Positions 39,187-59,563 of a DNA stretch of 64,000 nucleotides are shown one piece after another (the first letter of the stretch is position 1; each line of letters begins with the position of its first letter). The stretch spans positions 372,001-436,000 of IMG/VR virus record IMGVR_UViG_3300032770_000001; one strand, written 5' to 3'. The translations under genes were made by a program, and so were the position numbers. The notes below the pieces were generated by a model, which was given only the letters and a program-made list of their open reading frames with translations, was not told the DNA's origin and made no database searches.

Positions 39187-39281
39187 ATAAAGGCGGGGCT
39201 ATCAACCCCGCCCCCTGTTTTGCTGCATTTCACATGCAGTCCTCCGATAGCTCAAGAAAAGGGAGGCGATGAACGCCTCCC
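39187..39281 (-). terminator. Tandem terminators between the late head operon and the early island
   Basis: GGGAGGCG/CGCCTCCC plus TTTT (39257-39281) and GGCGGGG/CCCCGCC plus TTTATTT (39185-39212). Confidence 0.7.
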
Positions 39282-39308
39282 CAGTTCCTCGTACACGTGG
39301 TACGTGAA

Positions 39309-39539
39309 TTACGCGACTGGATCAGTCGGTGCGCGGCGAGCGCCTTGACGCTTCGGACGCGGACCGCCTTTGCCGAGAACGTAGTTGACAAAGGTGTTGA
39401 TGTCGAAACGCGGATTCTCCGCACTCAACGGTTGTGCAATGCGACGTGCAAATTGTTCCATCTGCTCAGGCGAGAGACCCGATTCCTTGATCGCATCTGC
39501 GATCATGATGTAGTCCTTACGGCTCAGGGCAACTTTGCT
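39309..39539 (-). CDS. RKDY..IA / NPRFD module, probably reached by +1 frameshift from 39538..40302
   Basis: Open frame reads SKVALSRKDYIMIADAIK...AENPRFDINTF and starts in the +1 frame at CTT TAG C. Confidence 0.6.
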   Translation of the reverse strand, partial: SKVALSRKDYIMIADAIKESGLSPEQMEQFARRIAQPLSAENPRFDINTFVNYVLGKGGPRPKRQGARRAPTDPVA

Positions 39540-40302
39540 AAAGACTCCCGGAGGCTGATTTCGCGCCTGCGGGGGTAACCTTTGCAGAAGATTTGTTCAC
39601 TTCACTAACACCCTCAGCACGCGGAATTTCGAGCTTACTCGGAGCCTTCGGTTGTCCGGCTGCGTCACGATCAGTGACGTATGCGTCGGAGCCAACGGCG
39701 GCTTCTTTTTCTTCAGGTTTCTCTTCCTTGTCTTCGGATTCGGACTTGTCCTCGGACTCGGATTTTTCTTCCTTCCCCTTCTCGAACGAGGGCTTTTCGT
39801 CAATCGGAGATTCCTGCGACTCTTCGCCCTTTTCCTCACCAAGCTCAAGCTCAGCCTTGCCTTCGTCAGTGAATGCTTGTTCGGCTGGGGTTGCGCCCAG
39901 ATCGACACCGAGAACCTCGGCTGCCATCTCGATAGCGGCTGCCTGCTCATCCAGTGCCTTGTAGGACTGACGGAGGGCGTCTGCCAGCATGTCCGGCTTT
40001 TCGTCGGCAGTCTGACGGAATCCCTTGGCGTAGTTACGGGCGGCGGCGACACGAACCTTTGCCGGAGCATCGGCGGCGGCACGGACGAGACCGAGATTGG
40101 TCTGGAGACCTTCCATCCAGTCAGCCTGACGTGCGGACTTCTCTACCAGAGAAGCCAGAATCTTCTCAAATTTCTGCGGGTTCTTGGCAGCGGCACGCAT
40201 CTTCTCGTACTTCGCCGCCTCTTCCGCTTTACGGGCTTCCTTACGGGCTACGATAGCCTCACGGAGCGCCTTGCGGTCGATTGCTTTCTTTTCCTTTGCC
40301 AT
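39538..40302 (-). CDS. Putative head-associated protein (K/E/A-rich, K-x-A motifs)
   Basis: GGAGG RBS and own late-type promoter motif. Confidence 0.75.
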   Translation of the reverse strand: MAKEKKAIDRKALREAIVARKEARKAEEAAKYEKMRAAAKNPQKFEKILASLVEKSARQADWMEGLQTNLGLVRAAADAPAKVRVAAARNYAKGFRQTADEKPDMLADALRQSYKALDEQAAAIEMAAEVLGVDLGATPAEQAFTDEGKAELELGEEKGEESQESPIDEKPSFEKGKEEKSESEDKSESEDKEEKPEEKEAAVGSDAYVTDRDAAGQPKAPSKLEIPRAEGVSEVNKSSAKVTPAGAKSASGSL

Positions 40303-40342
40303 GTTTCCTCCACCCTATTAAAGGGGTCAAAAAGTTCAGTTG

Positions 40343-43300
40343 TTAGGCGACTTTCAGCCCGTCGCCCTGAATACCTGCAACAATATCTTGAATATAGCGG
40401 TGCTCGACAACCACAGAGTCGCCCCAGTATGTTACCCCGCTTTCAGGGTTAGGCTCGCCGCTGCTGTAGCTTGAGTCGAGGTTTTCGATGATCCAGTCCT
40501 CAGCCGCCGCCGTCATTGGGGTCAACAGGAAGATGCCGCCCTCGTTGCGAACTTCAAAATCCGGCCCCTCGTAGGGAGCACCTTGTGGGGTGTACTGCGG
40601 CTTATCCGCCTTTTTCTTACGACCACGTGCGCCGGGGTGACCGCTTGACTTCTTGCTGCTGGTCAGCGGAAGTGCCTGCTGATTCGGATCGGGAGCAGGT
40701 GCTTCCGGTTGCTCTTCCTCGTACAGGTTGCCGCCGTACTGCATGAAAACCTCGTGCCCCTGCTTGAGTTCCTCGACCATATCTTCGATCTGGTAACGCT
40801 CGTGCCAGTACAGATTGCCGTTCGGATCAGCGAAGATTTCACCGGAGGTCAGAGCCCCGATGTCGGCGGGATTGACATTCTCCCAGCCGTTGGTGAAGAA
40901 GTCTTCCATGAGTTCCCAGATGCTCTGGTACGTCTGCGCATCTTGCGGTCCACCCTGAGCAACTTCCTGAAGCAACTGTGCAGTCGGCTTCAGTTTGATG
41001 CCGCCCTTACCGTAGAGGACATCGACGTAGGTGCCTTTGTCTTCGCCCTTGGTCGGCGTGCGTGCTTCCTGCGCATCCACTTTGTTCTGCTCGTCCTGCT
41101 GTTTCAACTCATCAAGCGTCACAGCCGTTTTCTTTGATGCGACAGCGGAGTTCGGAACGTAACCGACTTCCGGCTGTTTTGGCTTCAGACCGAGTTGGTC
41201 TGGAGTCTTCGGATTGCCACGCTGCTTCATGTTGAGAATTGCTGGATTTGCCGCTTCCTTGTCAGATGCGATCACTTCACCTTCCTCGTCATCATCATCG
41301 AACGGGACGTAGCCATCATAATCGGAACGCTCCGGATAGAATGCTGCCCATTCCGCCAATGCTTCAGCGTTGCCGCGACCGGATTCCTTGAAGCGAGCGA
41401 TCATCTCGTTCAGATACTCATAGCCATGCGTGGTCAGCGGGTTCTTTAGGAACTCACCGCAGCCTGCGCAGTTCTGCGGACTGTCGGACTCTTGATCGAA
41501 GAACGGACCTTTCGGATAGTTGTCGGAGTCATAGCTTGACTCGTCTTCCGGGTTCTCCGGGCCTTCGCCGTTCGCGTCGATTCTCTGCGCGATTTTTATA
41601 GCGCAGTCTTCGCACCACACGTCAGCGGCGTAGATGTATTCACCGTCGTTAGAACCACGGATACCACTGTCGGCACCGGGCTCGAATGCTTCTTTTTCCA
41701 TTGTGCCCTCTTTCACTTGCTCGTTCTTAAATGTCACGAAACGGTGACGCCCACCGTGCAGAGAAGTTCCGCAGCAATCGCAAGGACGTTTCGAAAACTC
41801 ATCGATGCCTTCGCCCGTCTCGCTGTCGAAGTCAGGAACCAGCCAACCCAATCTCTGGATGCCTGCCTGAATCTGCTCCATGCGCTTGTTAGCCTCTTCG
41901 CCCTGATAGTAATAATCAAGGCCGGAGTAGTCATCGTTCACTGCCGCTTGCAGACAGTCGTCGCACAACCACAAATTGTCCTGCTCAATTTCAGCGGCAG
42001 TTTTGTTTGCCTGAATGCCCATGTCTTTCAACATCTGCTTCTCTTCGTCCGTGGGGTTGTATTCCTTCTCGTGCCCGTGGAACTCTTCGATACCCGCAGG
42101 CTCTTCCAATTCTACGTCACCGGGGGTGATGTAGTCCGCGAGGCTCTGCAACTCAGCCAGTTCCGCATAGCTAATGCGCTCGGCACGAAGTTGGCTACGG
42201 AGATATTCCAGACGCTCCTGAATTTCCTCTGGCTCCAACTCGTCCTCGTCCTCATCAATCCATGCCTTCTTGCTCGATGCTTCCTTGGAGCAAGTGCCGC
42301 AGTACCACTTGTTGCCGATCTCGTGGCTGCCTTCGTCTACGTCAGATGAATCGAACACCTTACCGCAGCCAGCACATTCAACTTCGCGTGAAGAGGTCTT
42401 GTCGCTGCTTTCGACCGCATCCAGTCCCTCATCCACATGACGATCCATGCAGGATTCGTCGCCAGACTCAATCTCTTCGAGGTCGAGACCTTCGATGCTT
42501 TGCCCACCCTCGGCATCGACCACCGACCAAATCGCACCACACGGTCCGCACGTAACCCACCACTGTCCGTGCTCGAACGCAGGCACGCAACCTTCGTGAA
42601 TCTCAGTGAGAGGGTGAGACGCGATTAGACGCTCTACTTCCATCTCCATTTCCGGAGTGTTCTGCTCCGTTTTCAACGCTGCTTTCTTCATGGTGCCCTC
42701 TTCTGACGACATGTGGAATTTCTTGTTGGGAAGCTCCGGTGGGACGGTCTTCCGCTTCAGCCCTTCGTTTTCTTTCTCCTGTGGCAGCACAGCCATCGGT
42801 GCCCCCGGCTGTCCGGGGATCGGCTGCACTACCGGATTTGGTTCCGCTGTGGGTGCTTGCGGTTGCGCTGCTGGTGCCTGAACCGGAGCCGGAGCCGCCG
42901 CCACAGTCATGGAAACAACCTTCTCACCCGGCTTGAGCTTCTTGGTAACGGCTTTCTCCGCTCCCTGATAATCGTTGCCGCCTACGGTTTCTTCACGCTG
43001 ATTGCCTTTGGTGTCACGCAGGGTGACCTTCCACTTGGCTTCCTTCAACATCTTGATACCGTGATTGCGATTGACACTGTGCTCATTCGCGGTGTCTTCA
43101 GTCGTGCCCCATACCGGACAATTGCGGCACTGCCACATCTTCTCCGGAACGGTGACGCCCTTGAGAGCGTCCGGGTTGCGAGCTAACAACTTGTCCAAAC
43201 GTCCAGCCGTCTTGCTTGCACCCTTCATTTTCTTATAAGCTTCGAATTTCTGATCCTGCGGTACACCCGGCATGTGTTCTCCACCACCACGACAAGGGCG

Positions 43301-45391
43301 TAAATTGCAGGTTACACATTCCAGACAACGAGGGCAATACAGATGCGTGCGCTCTTGCTCATCATAGTCCGGTTCCTCAGGCATGTCGGCAGGCAAGAGG
43401 TTCTCCGCAAATTCTGCGGTCTTTGACGCTTGCTTGAGCTTCGAATAACGTTCCCGCATCTGTGCTAATGTCTTTTCGTCGAAACGGATGATGTCGGCAT
43501 TGCGCTTCAGACCCTCTTCAGAGCCAAATCCGCCAGTCACCAACTTCTCCTCATCGTTCACGAAATGGTAGGAACCGTCGTTGAGCTTCTCAACTTTCCA
43601 CTTGGGGTCATCGAGTTTGATGCCAACGGTCTTCGGCCCGGCGGGTTTCTTGCCGCCATGAATGTATTGCTCGTAATAAGCATCGTGCTCTTCAGCACTG
43701 ATTTTGCCAGCATAGCGCAATGCGTCAATCACGCCAGCGATGTAGTTGTAGGCGTTTGAATTCTTTGCTGAGTCATCCCAGATTTTCGTCAGGAAGGTGC
43801 CGACATCCAAACCACGGAGGCTATCCTTCAACTCGGCGACTTTAACTGCTCCGGCATGATAACTGCCTTGCGTGCGTCCATGCGGTGGACGCCCGGTGTC
43901 GCCTTCAGTGATCTGTGGCTGAATGCCATCATAGAATTGATCGCCGCCCTCAGCGCCGTCTTTCTTCTTAGGTTCGGTCTTCTTCATCAACTCCACGGTT
44001 TTGTCGAAGTTTTCGCTGTAGACCGGGCAATCGATGCGGTGCCGTCCATGATAGCCGCCGCAGCACTTTGAAGTGTCAATCGTCGGAACCGAAGTATCGG
44101 CAGCTTCTTTGCAAATGCAATTTTCCTTCACCCGGTCACACGCATCACAGTACGGCACACCAGCAGGCGGGTGAATATCCCGCTCAGTCTGAACCGCAGC
44201 CGCTTTCGGATCATTGATGCCGGGGACGATACCGTGTTCCCAATTCTTGCCACAGTCATTGCACTTGGCAGTCTCGAAGTCGGTCGGCATGAGCCCGTAG
44301 TCTGAGGAGCCGCAGTGTGGGCACTTCGGTTTAGCCGATGCCGTGGCGTGTACTTTCGCCTGCGGTTCTTTCATCTGAGTGATGAGATTGATAAGTTGGT
44401 ATCCAGTCTCTTCGCCACGAGGCAACTGTCCTTCGGTCGCAAACTCTTCAAGTAGACCGGGCAGTTCCGAGTAGTAACGCTTCAATGAGTCCTGACCGAG
44501 GTTGGTGACTTTCAGCCAGTCCTGTACCAGATCGCTCACCGTAATCTTGGCTTCCCCAGTGCTCTCCTGTGCGTGCTTCCAGAACAGTAAGAGAACGATC
44601 ATGTTGTACTTGGCAGCCGTGCGGGATACCTTGGTTGGGAGCCATGCGGCGAATCGCTTCGCTACGTTCTTGAATTCCTGCTCGGATTCAAACTCAGTGT
44701 GCGGCGATGGAGCATTCAACTGCTGACTGTCGATCAAACTATAAGTTTCGTCCTCCTCGTGCTTGCCGCCAGCAGGCTGCTCGCCGGAGACTTCCTCCGG
44801 ATGCTGCACCTGACGGATATAGCTCTTGGCACGCTCGATGCGGAAGGTAAACTGCTTCTTCAGGAATTCCGTAATCTGTTCGGCCACTGGGAGCTTCTTG
44901 ACGCCAGCGGGAAAGTTCTTGATGGCTCGCGGAAAGTCCTGCATCGCCTTGCCGTGCTGGAGCACGTAAAGGATGACGTGATAGATCGCCTCATCCTTCA
45001 GTTCGAAGTCGAGGGTTGTGGATGTGAGTGAGGGAACGAAGACTGTCTGAAACCACTTCGACCAATCCATCTTGGGATCGACCGGATATCCCGCCTGCTC
45101 AATGTAGGACTTGACGAACTTGTCGAAATCCTTGTTGTAGGCGAAGACGTAGCGGATTCGTGACGCAATACGCGCCTGACCCGGTGAGATCGGGTGGAAA
45201 TTGGCTGGGGTCTGAACAGGCTTCCCGGTGTACGGGTCGGCCAACCTGAAGGCGTAGCCGTCCGGTCCGGCGACTTTAGACACCACCCGGTAGGCGGAAC
45301 CATCGAGAGTATCGACAATTTGCCCCGGCGCGATAAGGCGGGAAAACTTGGTCAGGTTCGCCGCTGGTACTCGTACAGCGTCCTGAGGCAT
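40343..45391 (-). CDS. Very large multi-module protein (putative internal head polyprotein), possibly sigma-like N-terminal module
   Basis: About 15 small modules separated by KTA/KEA/KKA/KVA. Confidence 0.7.
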   Translation of the reverse strand: MPQDAVRVPAANLTKFSRLIAPGQIVDTLDGSAYRVVSKVAGPDGYAFRLADPYTGKPVQTPANFHPISPGQARIASRIRYVFAYNKDFDKFVKSYIEQAGYPVDPKMDWSKWFQTVFVPSLTSTTLDFELKDEAIYHVILYVLQHGKAMQDFPRAIKNFPAGVKKLPVAEQITEFLKKQFTFRIERAKSYIRQVQHPEEVSGEQPAGGKHEEDETYSLIDSQQLNAPSPHTEFESEQEFKNVAKRFAAWLPTKVSRTAAKYNMIVLLLFWKHAQESTGEAKITVSDLVQDWLKVTNLGQDSLKRYYSELPGLLEEFATEGQLPRGEETGYQLINLITQMKEPQAKVHATASAKPKCPHCGSSDYGLMPTDFETAKCNDCGKNWEHGIVPGINDPKAAAVQTERDIHPPAGVPYCDACDRVKENCICKEAADTSVPTIDTSKCCGGYHGRHRIDCPVYSENFDKTVELMKKTEPKKKDGAEGGDQFYDGIQPQITEGDTGRPPHGRTQGSYHAGAVKVAELKDSLRGLDVGTFLTKIWDDSAKNSNAYNYIAGVIDALRYAGKISAEEHDAYYEQYIHGGKKPAGPKTVGIKLDDPKWKVEKLNDGSYHFVNDEEKLVTGGFGSEEGLKRNADIIRFDEKTLAQMRERYSKLKQASKTAEFAENLLPADMPEEPDYDEQERTHLYCPRCLECVTCNLRPCRGGGEHMPGVPQDQKFEAYKKMKGASKTAGRLDKLLARNPDALKGVTVPEKMWQCRNCPVWGTTEDTANEHSVNRNHGIKMLKEAKWKVTLRDTKGNQREETVGGNDYQGAEKAVTKKLKPGEKVVSMTVAAAPAPVQAPAAQPQAPTAEPNPVVQPIPGQPGAPMAVLPQEKENEGLKRKTVPPELPNKKFHMSSEEGTMKKAALKTEQNTPEMEMEVERLIASHPLTEIHEGCVPAFEHGQWWVTCGPCGAIWSVVDAEGGQSIEGLDLEEIESGDESCMDRHVDEGLDAVESSDKTSSREVECAGCGKVFDSSDVDEGSHEIGNKWYCGTCSKEASSKKAWIDEDEDELEPEEIQERLEYLRSQLRAERISYAELAELQSLADYITPGDVELEEPAGIEEFHGHEKEYNPTDEEKQMLKDMGIQANKTAAEIEQDNLWLCDDCLQAAVNDDYSGLDYYYQGEEANKRMEQIQAGIQRLGWLVPDFDSETGEGIDEFSKRPCDCCGTSLHGGRHRFVTFKNEQVKEGTMEKEAFEPGADSGIRGSNDGEYIYAADVWCEDCAIKIAQRIDANGEGPENPEDESSYDSDNYPKGPFFDQESDSPQNCAGCGEFLKNPLTTHGYEYLNEMIARFKESGRGNAEALAEWAAFYPERSDYDGYVPFDDDDEEGEVIASDKEAANPAILNMKQRGNPKTPDQLGLKPKQPEVGYVPNSAVASKKTAVTLDELKQQDEQNKVDAQEARTPTKGEDKGTYVDVLYGKGGIKLKPTAQLLQEVAQGGPQDAQTYQSIWELMEDFFTNGWENVNPADIGALTSGEIFADPNGNLYWHERYQIEDMVEELKQGHEVFMQYGGNLYEEEQPEAPAPDPNQQALPLTSSKKSSGHPGARGRKKKADKPQYTPQGAPYEGPDFEVRNEGGIFLLTPMTAAAEDWIIENLDSSYSSGEPNPESGVTYWGDSVVVEHRYIQDIVAGIQGDGLKVA

Positions 45392-45712: not shown

Positions 45713-46384
45713 TTAGGTGATCGTCACCGTTGCGCTCGCGGTCAGCCCCAGAGGGTGCCCCGTCGCGTCGTAGCACGTCATGGTCAGCAGGATAGTGTGA
45801 GTCCACCCCGTGCCCTTGATGTAAATACCTGATCCAGCAGTAGTTATGCGACCGGAATCGAACGGCGGATCGATGCCGTTGTTTCCCGTAATCTCAATCT
45901 GAGCCACGTTGATGGTGTCCCAGATCAGGGTGACGGAATGTCCTGCCGTCGTGTTGCTGGGATTGGCTGCCAGAGCCGCCTGTGGCGGCAGGCTGCTGTC
46001 CCCGGTGGACTGATAGCTCGCGATCAAAGCGAAACCGGGCACAATCGGTGCCGCCGAGACGACGGCGATGACCTGCTGTACAAATGGGTCCGGGGTTGCC
46101 GTGCAACCAATGTAGTTGGCATCACCGACGTAAATAGCCGACAGGTTGTGGAAGCCGACTGTCAGGATGGTGAGATCGAGTTCTGCCGTGGAAATTGTGC
46201 TGGTCGGCGAGAGCGGCGTCAGGTTTACGGTCCCGAGCAGGTTGACGCCATCGAAGAAATTGACCGCGCCTGATGGCGGGGCAACGTTAAACGAAGACGC
46301 CGTGACCGTGACCGTCATCGCGATCTGTTGTTCGAACTGCGACGGCGACGGCGAAACGACGAGAGTGGCGGTTGTGGATACCAT
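45713..46384 (-). CDS. Ig-like (Big_3-type) domain virion protein
   Basis: PSGAVNFFDG..LLGTVNL...LTVGFHNLSAIYVGDANY. Confidence 0.75.
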   Translation of the reverse strand: MVSTTATLVVSPSPSQFEQQIAMTVTVTASSFNVAPPSGAVNFFDGVNLLGTVNLTPLSPTSTISTAELDLTILTVGFHNLSAIYVGDANYIGCTATPDPFVQQVIAVVSAAPIVPGFALIASYQSTGDSSLPPQAALAANPSNTTAGHSVTLIWDTINVAQIEITGNNGIDPPFDSGRITTAGSGIYIKGTGWTHTILLTMTCYDATGHPLGLTASATVTIT

Positions 46385-47014: not shown

Positions 47015-50000
47015 TTAGATTCGGCGACCCCACTGGTAGTTGATCGAAACGTTGGTTCCAGTGATAGTCTGCACGCCGCCGTCCTGACCACCGTTCTGGA
47101 ACTGTGTGAAGCCGAAGAACGGGTGCACTTTGTAGCAACCCAGCGAAGCCCCAGCCGGAGCGTTCGTCGGGTTCTGCACGGCGTACCAGTCCCACCAGCC
47201 ATGAACCGCAGCACTCTCAAGGCTGCTGTACGGAGCCAGCAAGTTCGGACTCTGACTGTCTATGCTGATGTTCGCCACGTCGGTCGCGATACCAAGGCAG
47301 TTGGGATCGAACGAAGCTGCCGGAGCCGTGCCAACAGCGGCGAGGCTGTTACCCAGACGAGCCGCATCTATTGCTACCTGTGAGGCGTTGTAGTCAACCA
47401 GATAGAACGGGCCGAACTCAGTGATTGTGTTGCTGGTCGCGGAATTGCGCCCATGCTGCACAGTCACACGAAGATTCGTGATACCAGTTTGACGGGCAAA
47501 CGAGTACGCATAACCGTTATGGGCACGCCACAGCGGAGTGATTTGCGTGTAGCTAGTTCCGCCGTTGGTTGAAACTTCAAACTTCAAACCACGGCACAAA
47601 TTGCGATTCTGCAAGAATTTGTAAGTTGAACCCTCAGCAGGGTTGACTTGCGAACCGTAGCTGTAAAACACCAGATCAACGAAGTTGCAGGTTGTCTGCA
47701 ATACTGAAGTGCTGAGACGGAACGTGCTGACCGATGGCAAGCTGGAGTTCGTTGCCGTGATGTTCAAGCGGTAGTAACGGTACGAACCCGGTGTCGTCAC
47801 ATTATAGGCGTAGCCGCGTGACGCCGATACACCAGTGCGTGTATCCAGCGTAGTCCACGAGGAGTTATCATTCGAACCCTGCAACTGGAAATTCGTCGGC
47901 AGACCGCTGCTTGGGTTATCCGAAGTGTCATAAACGGTGCGGAAACCATAAGACAGAACTGTCTGAGCATTGCCGAGACCGAGATCGATTTCGAGCCATT
48001 GTGTCGGAGAGCCACTAGCCTGCCAGAACTCTTGCGGGTTATTCATGAAGGCTTTCCAGCTTGCGGTAGTCGTACCGCTTTGTGAACTGCTGGAAGCCGT
48101 GTAAGTGTTGGAGCCCACCGTCCATGAGTACGGGTTGCTGCCTGTGACGATGTTAACGTTCGCCGGAGCATAAGCATAGCTTCCGGTAGCGAATCCGTTC
48201 GGCGTCCATACCAGAACCAGCGGTGAGGCGTCGAAGCCTACGTTAGAGCCGTCCAATTTGTTCCACGAAGCCGACGTTGTCCAGCCCTTATAAGCTGTAG
48301 TCAACGACGCAGTGTTCGGCGTTGTGCTGGTCGGAGCAGTCCAAGTCGCACCACCCGGATCGGTGTCGATAAAGTACGGAGTGATGGCTTCTTCTTGAGC
48401 AATGGTGCGGCTATCAGTGTTGGTGAACGTCTGACCCGCGAATTGTGCCCACGAAGAGCGCAACTTACGAGCAAACTTGGTGTTGCCATAGCACATGTTC
48501 CACGTGTGGAACTCGCCGTTAGTCCATGAAGTCGAAGACAACGGGCCGAACTGTACAGCCAAACCATACGGCAGGTTGATCGTGCTGGTGTAGCCGCCAG
48601 CATACGCACCCACAGTGTAGGGGTTGCTCGAAGCGTCGGAGAAACTGTCCGCCATTACCCAATTGCCGCCCGAATATTTCCAGTAAGTTGGCAGGAATGC
48701 CATGCCCTGCCCAGCCGCACGACCATAGGTCGCGTTTGAGGGCAAACCATCCTGTCCACCACCAGCGCAGCGCAAGAACACCATGTAATTGTCGGTCAAC
48801 GAAACTGGGAACATCCACGCCCCACGGTCGAGGAACTGTCCGGAAACCGGAGTCAAATCCATCCAAGACCAATAATCTTGCTGAACGCTTTGAATCGATG
48901 GAGGATTGCTGCTGTAGCTGTTGCGTTGAATCAACGACAAGCTGGTCGGCGAACTCCAGTTAAACCCCGGAGGAGCCAAGTAAATTGGGCACGTAGCGTT
49001 GTTCGAGTGAATCGGCTGATGCGGGAAGAACGTGGTGCGGTCGGCGTTCGTCGCATAGTCACGTGCGTGCGTAATCGAGATCGGCTGCGTGGCCGGGTTG
49101 AACTGGCTCGGATTGAAGCTATCGTTCGCGAACAATGTGCTTGACGCGACAGCGGTCAACTGCGTATTGCTCAGCGAAGCCGTAGAGCCGGATACGTTGA
49201 GTGTAAAGACCGATGCGCAATGCCAGCTACCCTGAACCAACAGGATGTTTGGAGCCACGTCATGCATGAATGCGTTGATGTCGTAGAACCAAAAATCTGG
49301 GTTCTGGCTTGGTGAAGTCGCATTGGCACCGAAGTTCGTACCGTACTGAATCGGTGAAGAACCGTTGATCTTGGACGTGTTCCATGTCGCAGCGACCGGA
49401 TCGTATGCCTGCACTTGCCAGTTGACATTAGTGACTGCACCGAAAGCGTTCGATACAGTGTACGGGCCGCCGCCCGAAACGCTAACGTCCTCGCACAGAA
49501 TGTAGAGCTTGCCATCGCGAGGGGAAATCATCTCGCTCAATGAACGACCGTTATGACGCCCGGTGTTTCCACTGAAGGTGATCGAACCCCATGCGCCCGT
49601 ACCGATGAAGTAATTGACGACACCAATGCGAGCCGTAGCGACCAAGCCCGTCTGTGTAGTGCGCGGATCGGCTGTCATGGTGCCGTAAAGCGCCCACAGT
49701 TCGTAACAAGTCGCCGTACCTGTGTCGGAGGCGTTGGTGTAGTTGCCGACCGTTGTCGGGACTTGGAAGCTGCTTGTGGATAATCCGGTTGCCGACACCA
49801 CATAGGTGATGTTGTTAATTCCGGACTCCTGCGTGCCTGTGATGTTCACCACATCGCCAGCTTGGAAATTATTTGCTGCCGTCACAGTCAGAACGCCGCC
49901 AGTTGCGGAAGTCGCCGTGATCGGCCCGGTGATTGTGCGCGTCTTCAATGCGCCGTAAGCCTCGCCCACGTGCGCAACTGCTGGAGCATTGGTCGCGAAA

Positions 50001-51601
50001 CTGAATGAACCGGAGCCAGCCAGTTCGAGAACACCGTTGGTCTGCGTGAAATCGTAACGAGCCAGTTTGCCATCCTCAGAGAGGAAGAAGACCTGATATC
50101 CCAATACCTGCGTAGAGTTGCTGGTATAGTAAGTCGGCACAGTCGCAACACCTGCAATACGCATCGCGGTGGAGCCTGTCCACGTATCCGCAAGATCAAA
50201 GAACAAGAGCGGCACCATCGAAGACTTATTGCTCCAGATCGAGCATTTGGTGTCCATCACCAAGCCGTAATATTCTTCGTTGATGTTGAATGTCGCCGCC
50301 TGACGAACGCGGAAGTCCGGGTTATAAACTGCAATACCACCCGAAGTTTCTCCCTGTGCGGAGTAAACACTGTGCACCGTGTTGATGGTGAATTGGGTGC
50401 TGGTTGCAGTAGCCACAGTCCAAAGCTGACCATTGAGCCACGTGTTGTTGCCGTTGGTCAAACCCTGAATGAAGACAATCTGGTTTGTCGAGAACGTATT
50501 TTTCGCAGTGACCGTAACTACGGTGCCGGATGAGGCCACAGAAGTGATTGCCGCACCCACATCACGCCCACCTGCCCAAACATATTCCTGTTGATCGTTG
50601 ACGTAGGTATACGGGTTCTGAATATTCTGACTTGAAACTACGACGCCCGTGCCGAGTGTCTGACCATCTTCCTCATACGGATAAGCGAATGAGTTGAAGC
50701 CGTTGTCAAATACTTTTGCCAAATGGAACGATAGACCACGACTGTTCAGCTTGCGCACACCTGTGATCTGGAACAGTTCGCGGTAGTTGTCGCTCGCGGC
50801 TGAGTTAAGACCGCCGCTCTGACGCAGAGGATCGCTAGTCGCCGGGTATGTCTGGCCTAAAGTATTTGGAGTTTCCGCACCCGACCACGCTGGCAACTGA
50901 CCTGACACGCTGTTGTTGTCATTAAATCCCGTCATGCGGAGCGAAGGGCGATTCTCCATGAAAAACTTCAGGCTGCCGGAGCCAGTTGACTGTGAGCCCG
51001 TGCTTGCAATGTGGAAAATCATGTAGCTCGCAGGCATGTAGATCGAGCGTGTCAACGCCGAGGACATGTTAATGATCGAGTCTGTACCATCGGAGGGCGA
51101 AGAGTTCGAGTCTAGCCACTGATGAGCAATGTCCGCCGTCATCGGCCATGACGCTACACCATGCCCGTATACGGGTTCATAATCCGCAGATTCTCCATTT
51201 GGATCGTGGCTATAATCGGCATAGACAAGACCACCGACAAGACTCCCAATGTAGCCGTCACGAAAACCGCTCACAGCAGGCGGAACAGCGGTTCCCACGA
51301 ATGCCATTGTGCGAACGAAATATCCACCGTTCGGACGCCATGCCTGACCACTGGACGTACCATCACCGGAGCCCGTTGTCTGCATGTAGCAATCGCTGCT
51401 CGGCGAGGCTGGGTTTGTTGAAGCCTGAGGATTGATGCTTCCCCATGTACTCAGAAGATGGAAGTAACGTGCGGTCTGTCCGTTTACGTTGTCCGGAATG
51501 ATACCGAATTCTGAAGCGAATGCACTGGCATTGCGTGTGACCGGAGAAGTAGCAAGAAACTGCCAGTTTAGATCGGCGATTTGATATGGGTGAATTGCCA
51601 T
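47015..51601 (-). CDS. Large tail/receptor-binding protein with discoidin (F5/8 type C) domain
   Basis: QWLEIDLG...PTNFQLQGSNDNSSWTTLD...YRYYRLNIT; two FCCH-like barrels; S/T/G/N-rich. Confidence 0.75.
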   Translation of the reverse strand: MAIHPYQIADLNWQFLATSPVTRNASAFASEFGIIPDNVNGQTARYFHLLSTWGSINPQASTNPASPSSDCYMQTTGSGDGTSSGQAWRPNGGYFVRTMAFVGTAVPPAVSGFRDGYIGSLVGGLVYADYSHDPNGESADYEPVYGHGVASWPMTADIAHQWLDSNSSPSDGTDSIINMSSALTRSIYMPASYMIFHIASTGSQSTGSGSLKFFMENRPSLRMTGFNDNNSVSGQLPAWSGAETPNTLGQTYPATSDPLRQSGGLNSAASDNYRELFQITGVRKLNSRGLSFHLAKVFDNGFNSFAYPYEEDGQTLGTGVVVSSQNIQNPYTYVNDQQEYVWAGGRDVGAAITSVASSGTVVTVTAKNTFSTNQIVFIQGLTNGNNTWLNGQLWTVATATSTQFTINTVHSVYSAQGETSGGIAVYNPDFRVRQAATFNINEEYYGLVMDTKCSIWSNKSSMVPLLFFDLADTWTGSTAMRIAGVATVPTYYTSNSTQVLGYQVFFLSEDGKLARYDFTQTNGVLELAGSGSFSFATNAPAVAHVGEAYGALKTRTITGPITATSATGGVLTVTAANNFQAGDVVNITGTQESGINNITYVVSATGLSTSSFQVPTTVGNYTNASDTGTATCYELWALYGTMTADPRTTQTGLVATARIGVVNYFIGTGAWGSITFSGNTGRHNGRSLSEMISPRDGKLYILCEDVSVSGGGPYTVSNAFGAVTNVNWQVQAYDPVAATWNTSKINGSSPIQYGTNFGANATSPSQNPDFWFYDINAFMHDVAPNILLVQGSWHCASVFTLNVSGSTASLSNTQLTAVASSTLFANDSFNPSQFNPATQPISITHARDYATNADRTTFFPHQPIHSNNATCPIYLAPPGFNWSSPTSLSLIQRNSYSSNPPSIQSVQQDYWSWMDLTPVSGQFLDRGAWMFPVSLTDNYMVFLRCAGGGQDGLPSNATYGRAAGQGMAFLPTYWKYSGGNWVMADSFSDASSNPYTVGAYAGGYTSTINLPYGLAVQFGPLSSTSWTNGEFHTWNMCYGNTKFARKLRSSWAQFAGQTFTNTDSRTIAQEEAITPYFIDTDPGGATWTAPTSTTPNTASLTTAYKGWTTSASWNKLDGSNVGFDASPLVLVWTPNGFATGSYAYAPANVNIVTGSNPYSWTVGSNTYTASSSSQSGTTTASWKAFMNNPQEFWQASGSPTQWLEIDLGLGNAQTVLSYGFRTVYDTSDNPSSGLPTNFQLQGSNDNSSWTTLDTRTGVSASRGYAYNVTTPGSYRYYRLNITATNSSLPSVSTFRLSTSVLQTTCNFVDLVFYSYGSQVNPAEGSTYKFLQNRNLCRGLKFEVSTNGGTSYTQITPLWRAHNGYAYSFARQTGITNLRVTVQHGRNSATSNTITEFGPFYLVDYNASQVAIDAARLGNSLAAVGTAPAASFDPNCLGIATDVANISIDSQSPNLLAPYSSLESAAVHGWWDWYAVQNPTNAPAGASLGCYKVHPFFGFTQFQNGGQDGGVQTITGTNVSINYQWGRRI

Positions 51602-58603: not shown

Positions 58604-59563
58604 TTAGTTCTCGCCGTAGTTGGCGGTCGAGTTGAAGCGACCATTGACCGTAAGACGCTGCACGCCGGACGGGTTGAACACGAGGAAGCCGAGGTTCTCG
58701 AAGATCGAGAAGCCGATCTGACGGAGGTCAGGACGGTCGGCGCTCATGACCGTGAGCGGAATACGCTCTGGGATAACGCCGAGGAACTCTGCGTCCGCCA
58801 GAATGTAGATCGAGCCGTAGCCGACCTTACGCGACTGGAGGAGCGTTGCGCCCCAGAGATAGCCCATCACGCCCGTTTTCAACAGCTTGCGCTGTGTTTC
58901 GCGGTCGATGTTCTGTTGGGTCCACTTCAACAGGTCCGTGTAGTCACGGGGGTTGAAGAAGACGAACGCGACTGAGAGGTCATGACGCTGCACCTGACCA
59001 AAGCCGTCTGCCATCGAGTTGATGTCAATCGGAGCGTTGATCGGAATGTCAGGGTTGTAGACCGGATCATTCGAGTTCTTACCCGCTGCGCTGTTCGCGA
59101 CACCGTCAAACAGAACGAACACGTATCCGTCTTCGGCTGCGCCCACTTCGGCTTTCGCCAAGTTCAGTGAACGAGCAACCAAGTCGAAACGGCGCTCTTT
59201 GATCTGCGTGATCGGGATCATCGGATTGGACACGATTTCGAACGTCGGAACCGTGACGCGCTTCGGTTTTGTAACGCGGACGATGTCACCACCTTCTTCG
59301 CCGACGATGAATGCTTCGACGAAGGACGAACCCGGAGTCGAGCCAACGGTCATCGCGTTGACATCGAATTCCTTGTCGTAGATGGGCAGTGCGCCATCCG
59401 GAAGAGTTTCGACCATGAGAGCCTTGCGAGCAATGCTCATATAGTCACGGCGACGACGCAGGGACGGACCGAGCGAAGCCGCAAGCTTCTGACGCCCACC
59501 CGCCGTCTTCAAAAGTTGGCCGAGCATTTGCGTCTGCTGTTGTGTGCGAGAAAGTTGTGCCAT
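58604..59563 (-). CDS. Major capsid protein (HK97 fold)
   Basis: Position after scaffold and decoration genes, strong RBS and terminator; RRDY.SIARK...LPDGALPIYDK, FEI.SNP, GYLWGA motifs of large-phage MCPs. Confidence 0.85.
   Translation of the reverse strand: MAQLSRTQQQTQMLGQLLKTAGGRQKLAASLGPSLRRRRDYMSIARKALMVETLPDGALPIYDKEFDVNAMTVGSTPGSSFVEAFIVGEEGGDIVRVTKPKRVTVPTFEIVSNPMIPITQIKERRFDLVARSLNLAKAEVGAAEDGYVFVLFDGVANSAAGKNSNDPVYNPDIPINAPIDINSMADGFGQVQRHDLSVAFVFFNPRDYTDLLKWTQQNIDRETQRKLLKTGVMGYLWGATLLQSRKVGYGSIYILADAEFLGVIPERIPLTVMSADRPDLRQIGFSIFENLGFLVFNPSGVQRLTVNGRFNSTANYGEN

Follow-up and report, generated by a model that had tools for sequence, protein, structure and literature searches.

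Does translation of a 254-codon phage gene leave its reading frame at the last sense codon, so as to continue into a small protein domain encoded in the overlapping +1 frame? The question is raised by a locus on a 455,708-bp (456-kb) viral contig of a huge uncultivated phage from a wetland metagenome, of which we analysed a stretch of 64,000 nucleotides, here called the window. The ORF for the 254-amino-acid protein ends with the codons TCC GGG AGT CTT, the stop TAG and then a C, while the +1 frame reads past this stop as AGC AAA GTT GCC CTG AGC CGT AAG GAC TAC ATC ATG and closes at 39311..39309, after 76 codons. An earlier note on this DNA had proposed a +1 frameshift like that in the gene for release factor 2 (prfB). 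Its reading of the ORF end, of CTT-TAG-C and of the 76-codon frame down to 39309 held, on the minus strand, and these frame relations are plainly shown. The shift itself has gained strong comparative support: it is likely that a programmed prfB-type +1 frameshift at CTT-TAG joins the 254-codon ORF to the 76-codon module. The evidence is comparative only, and the shift remains an inference, no product having been observed.

The features of the locus are collected in Table 1. Going upstream, the +1 frame meets a stop at 39599..39597, which leaves an overlap of 19 codons with the 254-codon ORF; its first ATG, GTG or TTG is the ATG at 39506. The 12-nt motif at the junction, GGGAGNCTTTRR, is not by itself beyond chance: it occurs once in the window against 0.07 expected, and 7 of 100 shuffles gave at least one match. 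Its significance lies in its position and in its conservation.

Table 1. Features around the 3′ end of the gene for the 254-aa protein (positions in the window).
Feature	Position	Strand	Remarks
Zero-frame ORF	39538..40302	minus	254 aa; coding part 40302..39541 plus TAG stop 39540..39538; from the ORF listing and the sequence
AAGG	39579..39582	minus	(nearly) invariant columns; complementary to the CTTT of the putative shift site
Hairpin ACCCCCG...CGGG	39547..39576	minus	last paired base directly 5′ of the E-site codon; -12.8 kcal/mol, z -2.25
Putative shift cassette GGG AGT CTT TAG	39538..39549	minus	GGGA..CTT + stop invariant in 15 loci
+1-frame extension, three-helix module (SKVALSRKDYIMIADAIKE...NPRFD...)	39309..39539	minus	76 codons + stop
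Internal ATG, rival start	39504..39518	minus	ATG 39506-39504, AAGGA 39518-39514; 7-nt spacing; 65-aa product
Intrinsic-terminator-like hairpin + T run	39260..39282	minus	just past the module stop; marks the end of the transcription unit

The sequence is continuous across the junction. A 73-kb contig from an independent assembler, probably built from the source sample, shows 0 differences and 0 gaps over 39250-40350, and a second sample yielded a contig that matches 39350-39613, across the junction, exactly. The indel that the earlier note had wished to see excluded is thus absent from the independent assembly as well as from the second sample. The same junction recurs in the relatives' assemblies at JGI, ENA, NCBI and Logan. 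The strain variants are substitutions only; the module has six and the upstream ORF one, and each is synonymous in its proposed frame. With every variant in the module synonymous, we infer that purifying selection acts on the module.

The 254-aa protein and its homologues (27 + 97) form a family of about 120 clusters, which was found only in metagenomic contigs of huge phages. Throughout the family, a helical N-terminal domain of roughly 150 amino acids is followed by an acidic linker and short repeats (GSDAFVTDRD.., FVKDIPQSQG..). In the structural model of the 254-aa protein, residues 1-135 form a confident helical bundle (pLDDT about 90) and the remainder is disordered, the C-terminal part being an acidic disordered region with short repeats. 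The module is modelled as a three-helix bundle (pLDDT 86) with helices at residues 7-18, 24-41 and 47-55, and its homologues occur fused, standalone or in tandem, including small viral proteins. The existence of fused homologues is shown: a single ORF encodes both the N-terminal domain and the module in 22 of about 120 family proteins (...KKAMSRKDYIMIADAIKE...). Sixteen clusters are of the type seen in the window, with a C-terminus of the form ...KVTP....G-x-L-stop, and most of the remaining members finish in a basic tail (..PGNKAAAAKR).

Neither the window nor the 254-aa protein has a DNA or protein match in GenBank phages. Pfam, PHROG, NCBIfam and PADLOC contain no family for the 254-aa protein, the module, a fused homologue or the SH3-type ORF found downstream of the stop in some relatives (see below), and searches of family libraries detected no release-factor or other known domain in the 254-aa protein. 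All that these libraries returned was phrog_2922, matching the module weakly, and SH3_3, which stayed below threshold. PDB sequence searches and Foldseek searches with both models gave nothing significant, and a protein atlas search returned only unnamed viral clusters. No relatives were detected in 185,579 species genomes; the same DNA pattern, searched there as a negative control, gave 35 chance hits, none in the family. A reverse search from the SH3-type domain yielded no loci beyond those already found, Rfam holds no family at the shift site and the window contains no tRNA.

In all, we read the junction DNA in 15 distinct G-x-L loci, the one in the window included. The terminal GGG-ANN-CTT-stop is present in all 15, and GGGA and CTT never vary; conservation is in this respect an observation, not an inference. 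The middle codon is AGT, AGC, AGG, AAG, ACG or AAT, and TAG, TAA and TGA are all used as the stop after CTT (L049 and L050 read CTT TGA C). Anchored on the stop, the information content of the alignment reaches its maximum at GGGA and CTTT, with low values on either side. Selection for the G-x-L peptide alone is insufficient to account for this, because CTT makes up 18% of the Leu codons and GGG 10% of the Gly codons in the cassette genes. The cassette loci were partly found via their protein tails, while the scans with the N-terminal domain were blind to the cassette. Since the 15 loci are related, they cannot be counted as independent events; according to the tree and the identity matrix, they span deep splits. 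In the L052 lineage, an in-frame TAA stands 18 codons ahead of an otherwise intact cassette, and extra frame disruptions were seen in L007 and L052.

The N-terminal identity amongst the 15 cassette genes ranges between 38 and 92%, with a median of 46%. In a tree of 106 family members, G-x-L forms occur in all three main clades, and well-supported branches force at least five changes of state. As the G-x-L forms span three clades over this range of identity, we conclude that the cassette is old and that it has repeatedly given way to an in-frame fusion or to another tail. Whether one base change could have turned the cassette into the fused forms was also addressed by comparison, without a convincing result.

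The +1 frame beyond the stop is open for 51-226 codons in 15 of 15 cassette loci, where the +2 frame is open for only 3-22 codons. In ten family loci that lack the cassette, the +1 frame closes after 1, 1, 20, 6, 7, 78, 36, 4, 33 and 9 codons (median about 8), and the difference in +1 openness between cassette and non-cassette loci is significant (Mann-Whitney p = 5e-5). Each of the 15 cassette loci has an intact extension ORF and, upstream, at least 17 further open codons in the +1 frame. Two unrelated contents are found in this frame: the three-helix module in eight loci and an SH3-like domain in seven. The latter is followed by a conserved ..YVE.VGC.I.VE.. domain, and that gene was found only behind the cassette. 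Moreover, in L005 and L009 the 34-44 codons past the stop encode, in the +1 frame, a further FVKDIPQ(A/S)Q repeat of the upstream protein and then the module; the only upstream start that gene callers found in these two loci is a GTG inside the cassette.

In four loci (the window, L035, L038 and L047), no ATG, GTG or TTG precedes the conserved downstream domain. The earlier note had stated that the module has no start codon or ribosome-binding site at its N-terminus, and this held; to be added is the AAGGA before the internal ATG 39506. Helix 1 of the module begins at residue 7 and ATG 39506 corresponds to residue 12, and therefore initiation there would drop residues 7-11 of the helix, the best-conserved part of the module (S/T-R/K-K-D-Y). 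As helix 1 starts upstream of this ATG, the full module requires translation from further upstream. The Met encoded by ATG 39506 is not conserved in the homologues. The first residue of the module is Met in most homologues and Trp or Leu in the tandem-repeat homologues; the fused homologue P0029 has Leu there, in line with the CTG of the window. This position is a residue of the hydrophobic core and, given the Trp and Leu found there, not necessarily a start. Most module-type relatives keep an ATG at the first residue of the module, so that separate expression is also possible in these. In several SH3-type loci, the stretch from the stop to the domain contains its own promoter-like TATACT, Shine-Dalgarno (SD) sequence and ATG.

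A second conserved element, AAGG-NN-ACCCC-N-R-C, lies about 30 nt upstream of the shift site. Its ACCCC and the GGG codon of the cassette delimit a predicted hairpin which has the same placement in 15 of 15 loci, with folding energies between -8.9 and -19.2 kcal/mol. The stability of the 30-nt window that ends at the end of the hairpin ranks in the top ~1% within each gene (median 0.9%). One inner pair covaries (GC:11 / AU:3), and the apical stems vary between clades yet stay paired. RNAalifold recovered only a 4-bp core of the hairpin from a MAFFT alignment, and a wider stem specified by us is 76% paired, as compared to 35-50% in slid controls, with little covariation. Structural selection on the hairpin is therefore likely but not proven, since covariation events are few and both arms lie in coding sequence. 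Of 14 sequences, 13-14 retain the AAGG:CTTT pairs (11-56 to 14-53), without variation; the pairs are also seen in the minimum free energy folds, from which we predict that in ribosome-free mRNA this pairing would extend the hairpin over the site.

The GGG at 39549-39547 both closes the hairpin and begins the SD-like GGGAG, which sits 1 nt from CTT and overlaps the E-site codon. Pairing of this element with the anti-SD is predicted at -6.6 to -9.7 kcal/mol in 11 of 15 loci (top 1.4-4.2% of the gene) and is weak, about -4 kcal/mol (top 9-20%), in the four loci that carry GGGAAG, GGGACG or GGGAAT; the rRNA of the host is unknown. Across the 15 loci, the hairpin is thus the more constant companion of the site.

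In the mechanism that we propose, a ribosome on the 254-codon ORF would come to hold Leu-254 (CUU, 39543-39541) in the P site and UAG in the A site, with AGU as the E-site codon. Termination at UAG-C would be slow, and the peptidyl-tRNA-Leu would re-pair one base forward, from CUU to UUU. AGC would be decoded next, and 76 more codons would give a 330-aa protein with the three-helix module at its C-terminus; ribosomes that terminate at UAG would yield the 254-aa form. The shift would probably be aided by a duplex that abuts or invades the E site. Two candidate stimulators can be named: the conserved hairpin, 39576..39547, refolding behind the ribosome, and GGGAG paired with the anti-SD tail of 16S rRNA. 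These two would compete, as both use the same GGG. The slip, its efficiency, the stimulator at work and the roles of the two protein forms are all inferred.

Published work lends plausibility to this scheme. In Flavobacterium, about 7% shifting is obtained from a CUU-stop alone, without SD pairing (PMC10798248). For the RF2 gene, stimulation of the shift is reported for SD duplexes that reach up to or into the E site. At CUUUGA, a stable E-site-juxtaposed hairpin reached about 60% of the SD effect when assayed in a cell-free system from E. coli (PMC6321510), and stimulation of +1 shifting by a hairpin has also been shown in yeast (PMC3639245).

The frameshift reading is supported by the fused homologues, the conserved cassette, the always-open +1 frame and the absence of a usable start for the full module in the window. 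There are also points that speak against it: the spacing of GGGAG (1 nt and not 3), the AAGGA before ATG 39506 and the small number of covariation events in the hairpin. Furthermore, evidence from proteins, ribosome profiling or reporters is lacking, and the host is unknown.

Other claims of the earlier note fared unevenly. The conservation of CTT-TAG/TGA in orthologues, named there as a check, is borne out for CTT and a stop in 15 of 15 loci, with TAG, TAA or TGA as the stop; the suggested sensitivity to RF1 is, given these three stops, not a feature of the family. The internal SD, GGGAG, held in part, being SD-like in 11 of 15 loci only, and the conserved hairpin had gone unseen. The proposals of a K-x-A site after the shift, of a role for the module as "cargo" and of a low copy number set by the shift are unsupported.

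The rival explanation that survives best, although we think it unlikely, is that of two ordinary genes. The module would be made separately, from ATG 39506 (65 aa) or from CTG 39527, and the conserved end of the upstream gene would be a C-terminal peptide and/or an RNA hairpin with another role (mRNA stability, processing). In its favour, AAGGA stands 7 nt before ATG 39506, and a truncated 65-aa product cannot be excluded from sequence alone. This product is on record as a gene-caller prediction (P0028), and standalone small homologues exist. An ATG at the start of the module in most relatives, the own promoter-like and SD signals of some SH3-type loci and the premature in-frame TAA upstream of the cassette in L052 also speak for it. 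Against it, ATG 39506 truncates helix 1 and specifies a Met that is not conserved, and CTG 39527 has no SD within 17 nt. Two separate genes leave unexplained the invariant CTT and GGG, the A with which the variable middle codon always starts, the open +1 frame in 15 of 15 loci, the loci without any start codon and the continuation of the repeat in the +1 frame in L005 and L009.

Very unlikely is a real shift elsewhere in the 19-codon overlap, for instance at the C run ACC CCC G, or transcriptional slippage. In its favour, every locus has at least 17 open +1 codons upstream, ACCCCC is conserved, and CCC-stop is the +1 site in tail genes of Listeria phages (PMC5009743). However, the zero-frame stop directly after CTT in 15 of 15 loci is explained only by a shift at that place, and the C run is not followed by a stop or by an evident hungry codon. 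The junction, CTTT only, has no homopolymer long enough for transcriptional slippage.

We give still less credence to gene decay, that is, to a once-fused ORF broken by a recent 1-nt change and to a break without function. Fused homologues are common, and L007 and L052 have frame disruptions; but the identical break and the identical 10 fixed bases are found in three deep clades, the variants in the module are all synonymous and the extension ORFs are intact in 15 of 15 loci. That the ORF is truly continuous and an indel arose in assembly or sequencing, for which nothing speaks beyond the general possibility in metagenome assembly, is all but excluded by the gapless independent assembly, the second-sample contig that is identical across the junction and the same junction in the assemblies of relatives.

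Two further readings were tried and rejected. Reassignment of the stop codon is ruled out by the presence of all three stops in the cassette; read-through here would meet a TAA after 6 codons. GGGAG as the ribosome-binding site of a downstream start, or termination-reinitiation, is ruled out by the 14-23 nt to the nearest ATG and by four loci without any.

The preferred reading, a +1 shift at CTT-TAG, can be set against the recoding sites already known. As in prfB, CUU stands in the P site before an in-frame stop, the slip would be to UUU, a long +1 ORF follows, a G-rich SD-like element lies 5′ of the site and the direction of the shift is conserved among homologues. Unlike in prfB, the gene is a phage gene that does not encode a release factor and lacks the autoregulatory loop; its stop is UAG in the window and varies among TAG, TAA and TGA in relatives. 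The phage GGGAG is 1 nt from CUU (3 nt in prfB) and its predicted pairing is weak in 4 of 15 loci, and the phage site has a conserved hairpin. From this comparison, we infer that the phage cassette works like prfB without being a member of the prfB family. According to the PRFect paper (PMC10274946), every CUU-stop +1 case in RECODE is prfB, and no report of such a site in huge phages was found in the literature searched.

In the Listeria phages PSA, A118 and A500, the gene for the major tail protein, tsh, undergoes a +1 shift at CCC_UGA (PMC5009743). The case studied here resembles tsh in that a phage gene would slip +1 at the last sense codon before the stop, with a C-terminally extended second product (inferred here from frames and conservation). 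It differs in the slip codon, which is CTT in 15 of 15 loci and never CCC, and in the gene family; furthermore, it concerns huge uncultivated phages, has an upstream hairpin or SD-like element and shows two alternative extension domains. In Ty1 of yeast, at CUU AGG C, a peptidyl-tRNA-Leu likewise moves forward by one base from CUU during a pause at the A site, but there the pause results from a rare AGG codon in a eukaryote, and here it would result from a stop codon in a bacterial system.

The closest likeness to the hairpin is with engineered E-site-juxtaposed refolding hairpins (CUUUGA or CUUCGGC; PMC6321510, PMC3639245), in which the 3′ end of the hairpin is also located directly 5′ of the E-site codon. 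Those were synthetic or borrowed, whereas the arrangement in the phages is natural and conserved; its effect on the shift is inferred, and the same bases could instead pair with 16S rRNA. This leads to a bolder reading, which we offer tentatively and to which we lend rather less belief than doubt: the cassette would be an ancient portable recoding adaptor of a huge-phage family, made up of an E-site-abutting hairpin, CUU and any stop. Its natural stimulator would be the refolding hairpin and not SD pairing, and it would attach interchangeable C-terminal domains to a set fraction of one protein. If true, a hairpin mechanism so far demonstrated with engineered constructs alone would here have its first natural example in a bacterial system.

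So far, shifting +1 at CUU-stop has been viewed as peculiar to the gene for release factor 2. If the frameshift in the phages is real, a second, unrelated and long-conserved family would make the CUU-stop shift a general tool rather than a one-off autoregulatory trick. The family would also provide a natural test bed for E-site-adjacent duplexes (hairpin versus SD:anti-SD), as its members differ in the strength of the SD and not in the hairpin. Gene callers split such genes and invent starts for the second part (a GTG or ATG inside GGGAGTCTTT, a truncated 65-aa ORF); provided that the shift occurs, recognising the cassette corrects the annotation of huge phages and reveals a protein, of unknown function, that is made in two forms.

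The -1 shifts of lambda G/GT and of 10A/10B in T7 and T3 also yield a short and an extended form of a structural or assembly protein, with the N-terminus in common and their ratio fixed by the efficiency of recoding; there too, relatives sometimes have an in-frame fusion instead of a shift. Here the shift would be +1 and not -1, and no X_XXY_YYZ heptamer is found at the junction. Unlike lambda G/GT, the gene does not lie between those for the tail tube and the tape measure; it immediately follows the gene for a 1682-aa protein and precedes the terminator-like hairpin. The relatives carry a giant protein in the same upstream position. The same gene block in the window includes a major head protein (58604..59563; phrog_2522) and a tail-like protein of 1528 amino acids (47015..51601).

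The three-helix module that follows the proposed frameshift site would be the final coding sequence of its transcription unit, since terminator-like hairpins stand back-to-back directly after its stop codon. The site itself is located in a structural gene block, as inferred from the proteins encoded nearby, i.e., the major head protein, a 1528-aa protein matching a tail-protein PHROG and a protein with an Ig-like domain. In all relatives examined, the gene immediately 5′ of the frameshift gene encodes a very large protein, with lengths between 1132 and 1883 aa; the one in the window (1682 aa) had no family match.

Features of the window and of related loci
Feature	Position	Strand	Remarks
1682-aa protein	window 40343-45391	-	many CxxC pairs, low-complexity linkers
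Terminator-like hairpin	window 39260-39282	-	back-to-back with the next; directly after module stop
Terminator-like hairpin	window 39192-39212	+	as above
223-aa protein	window 45713-46384	-	bacterial Ig-like domain
1528-aa protein	window 47015-51601	-	F5/8 type C (discoidin) domain; match to tail-protein PHROG
Major head protein	window 58604-59563	-	phrog_2522, E 7e-42
Locus L052 (protein P0122)	L052:1-861		IMGVR_UViG_3300044800_000271; protein present on 19 contigs
Loci L007 and L008 (protein P0018)	L007:3180-3360		two sequencing runs

In the related loci L007 and L008, a C run some 100 nt upstream has acquired a 1-nt insertion and the hairpin loop a 4-nt deletion, a net change of -3; the N-terminal frame is still in register on reaching CTT-TAA. 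The 33 residues between the two indels are out of the conserved frame, and the conserved peptide and the module make up a single continuous +1 ORF.

The locus L052 has an in-frame TAA 18 codons 5′ of the cassette (GGG-ANN-CTT-stop), at a position where its relatives have CAA. Its cassette and module are otherwise intact, and the hairpin contains an A.C mismatch. Either the link has been lost in that lineage, or else a further recoding event takes place.

The module also occurs in other architectures. Three small proteins (P0036, P0037 and P0041) carry the DNPRFD module duplicated in tandem, with Trp or Leu where the phage fusions have Met. Two homologues with the module fused in frame (P0004 and P0019) include an additional zinc-ribbon-like insert, HCP(D/E)CKYPG....GKCRHCKKK, positioned between the repeats and the module.

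A -10-like motif, CGTATACT or GTATAAT, followed by a SD, was observed 5′ of the next gene in seven loci (L011, L024, L026, L035, L041, L043 and L046). It is conserved, is situated in the intergenic region 3′ of the family gene and, together with the SD, likely constitutes a phage promoter. A motif search of the window did not yield the combined -10-like and SD motif. At the loci with a cassette, the open +1 frame passes through the -10-like motif, which there encodes R-I-L.
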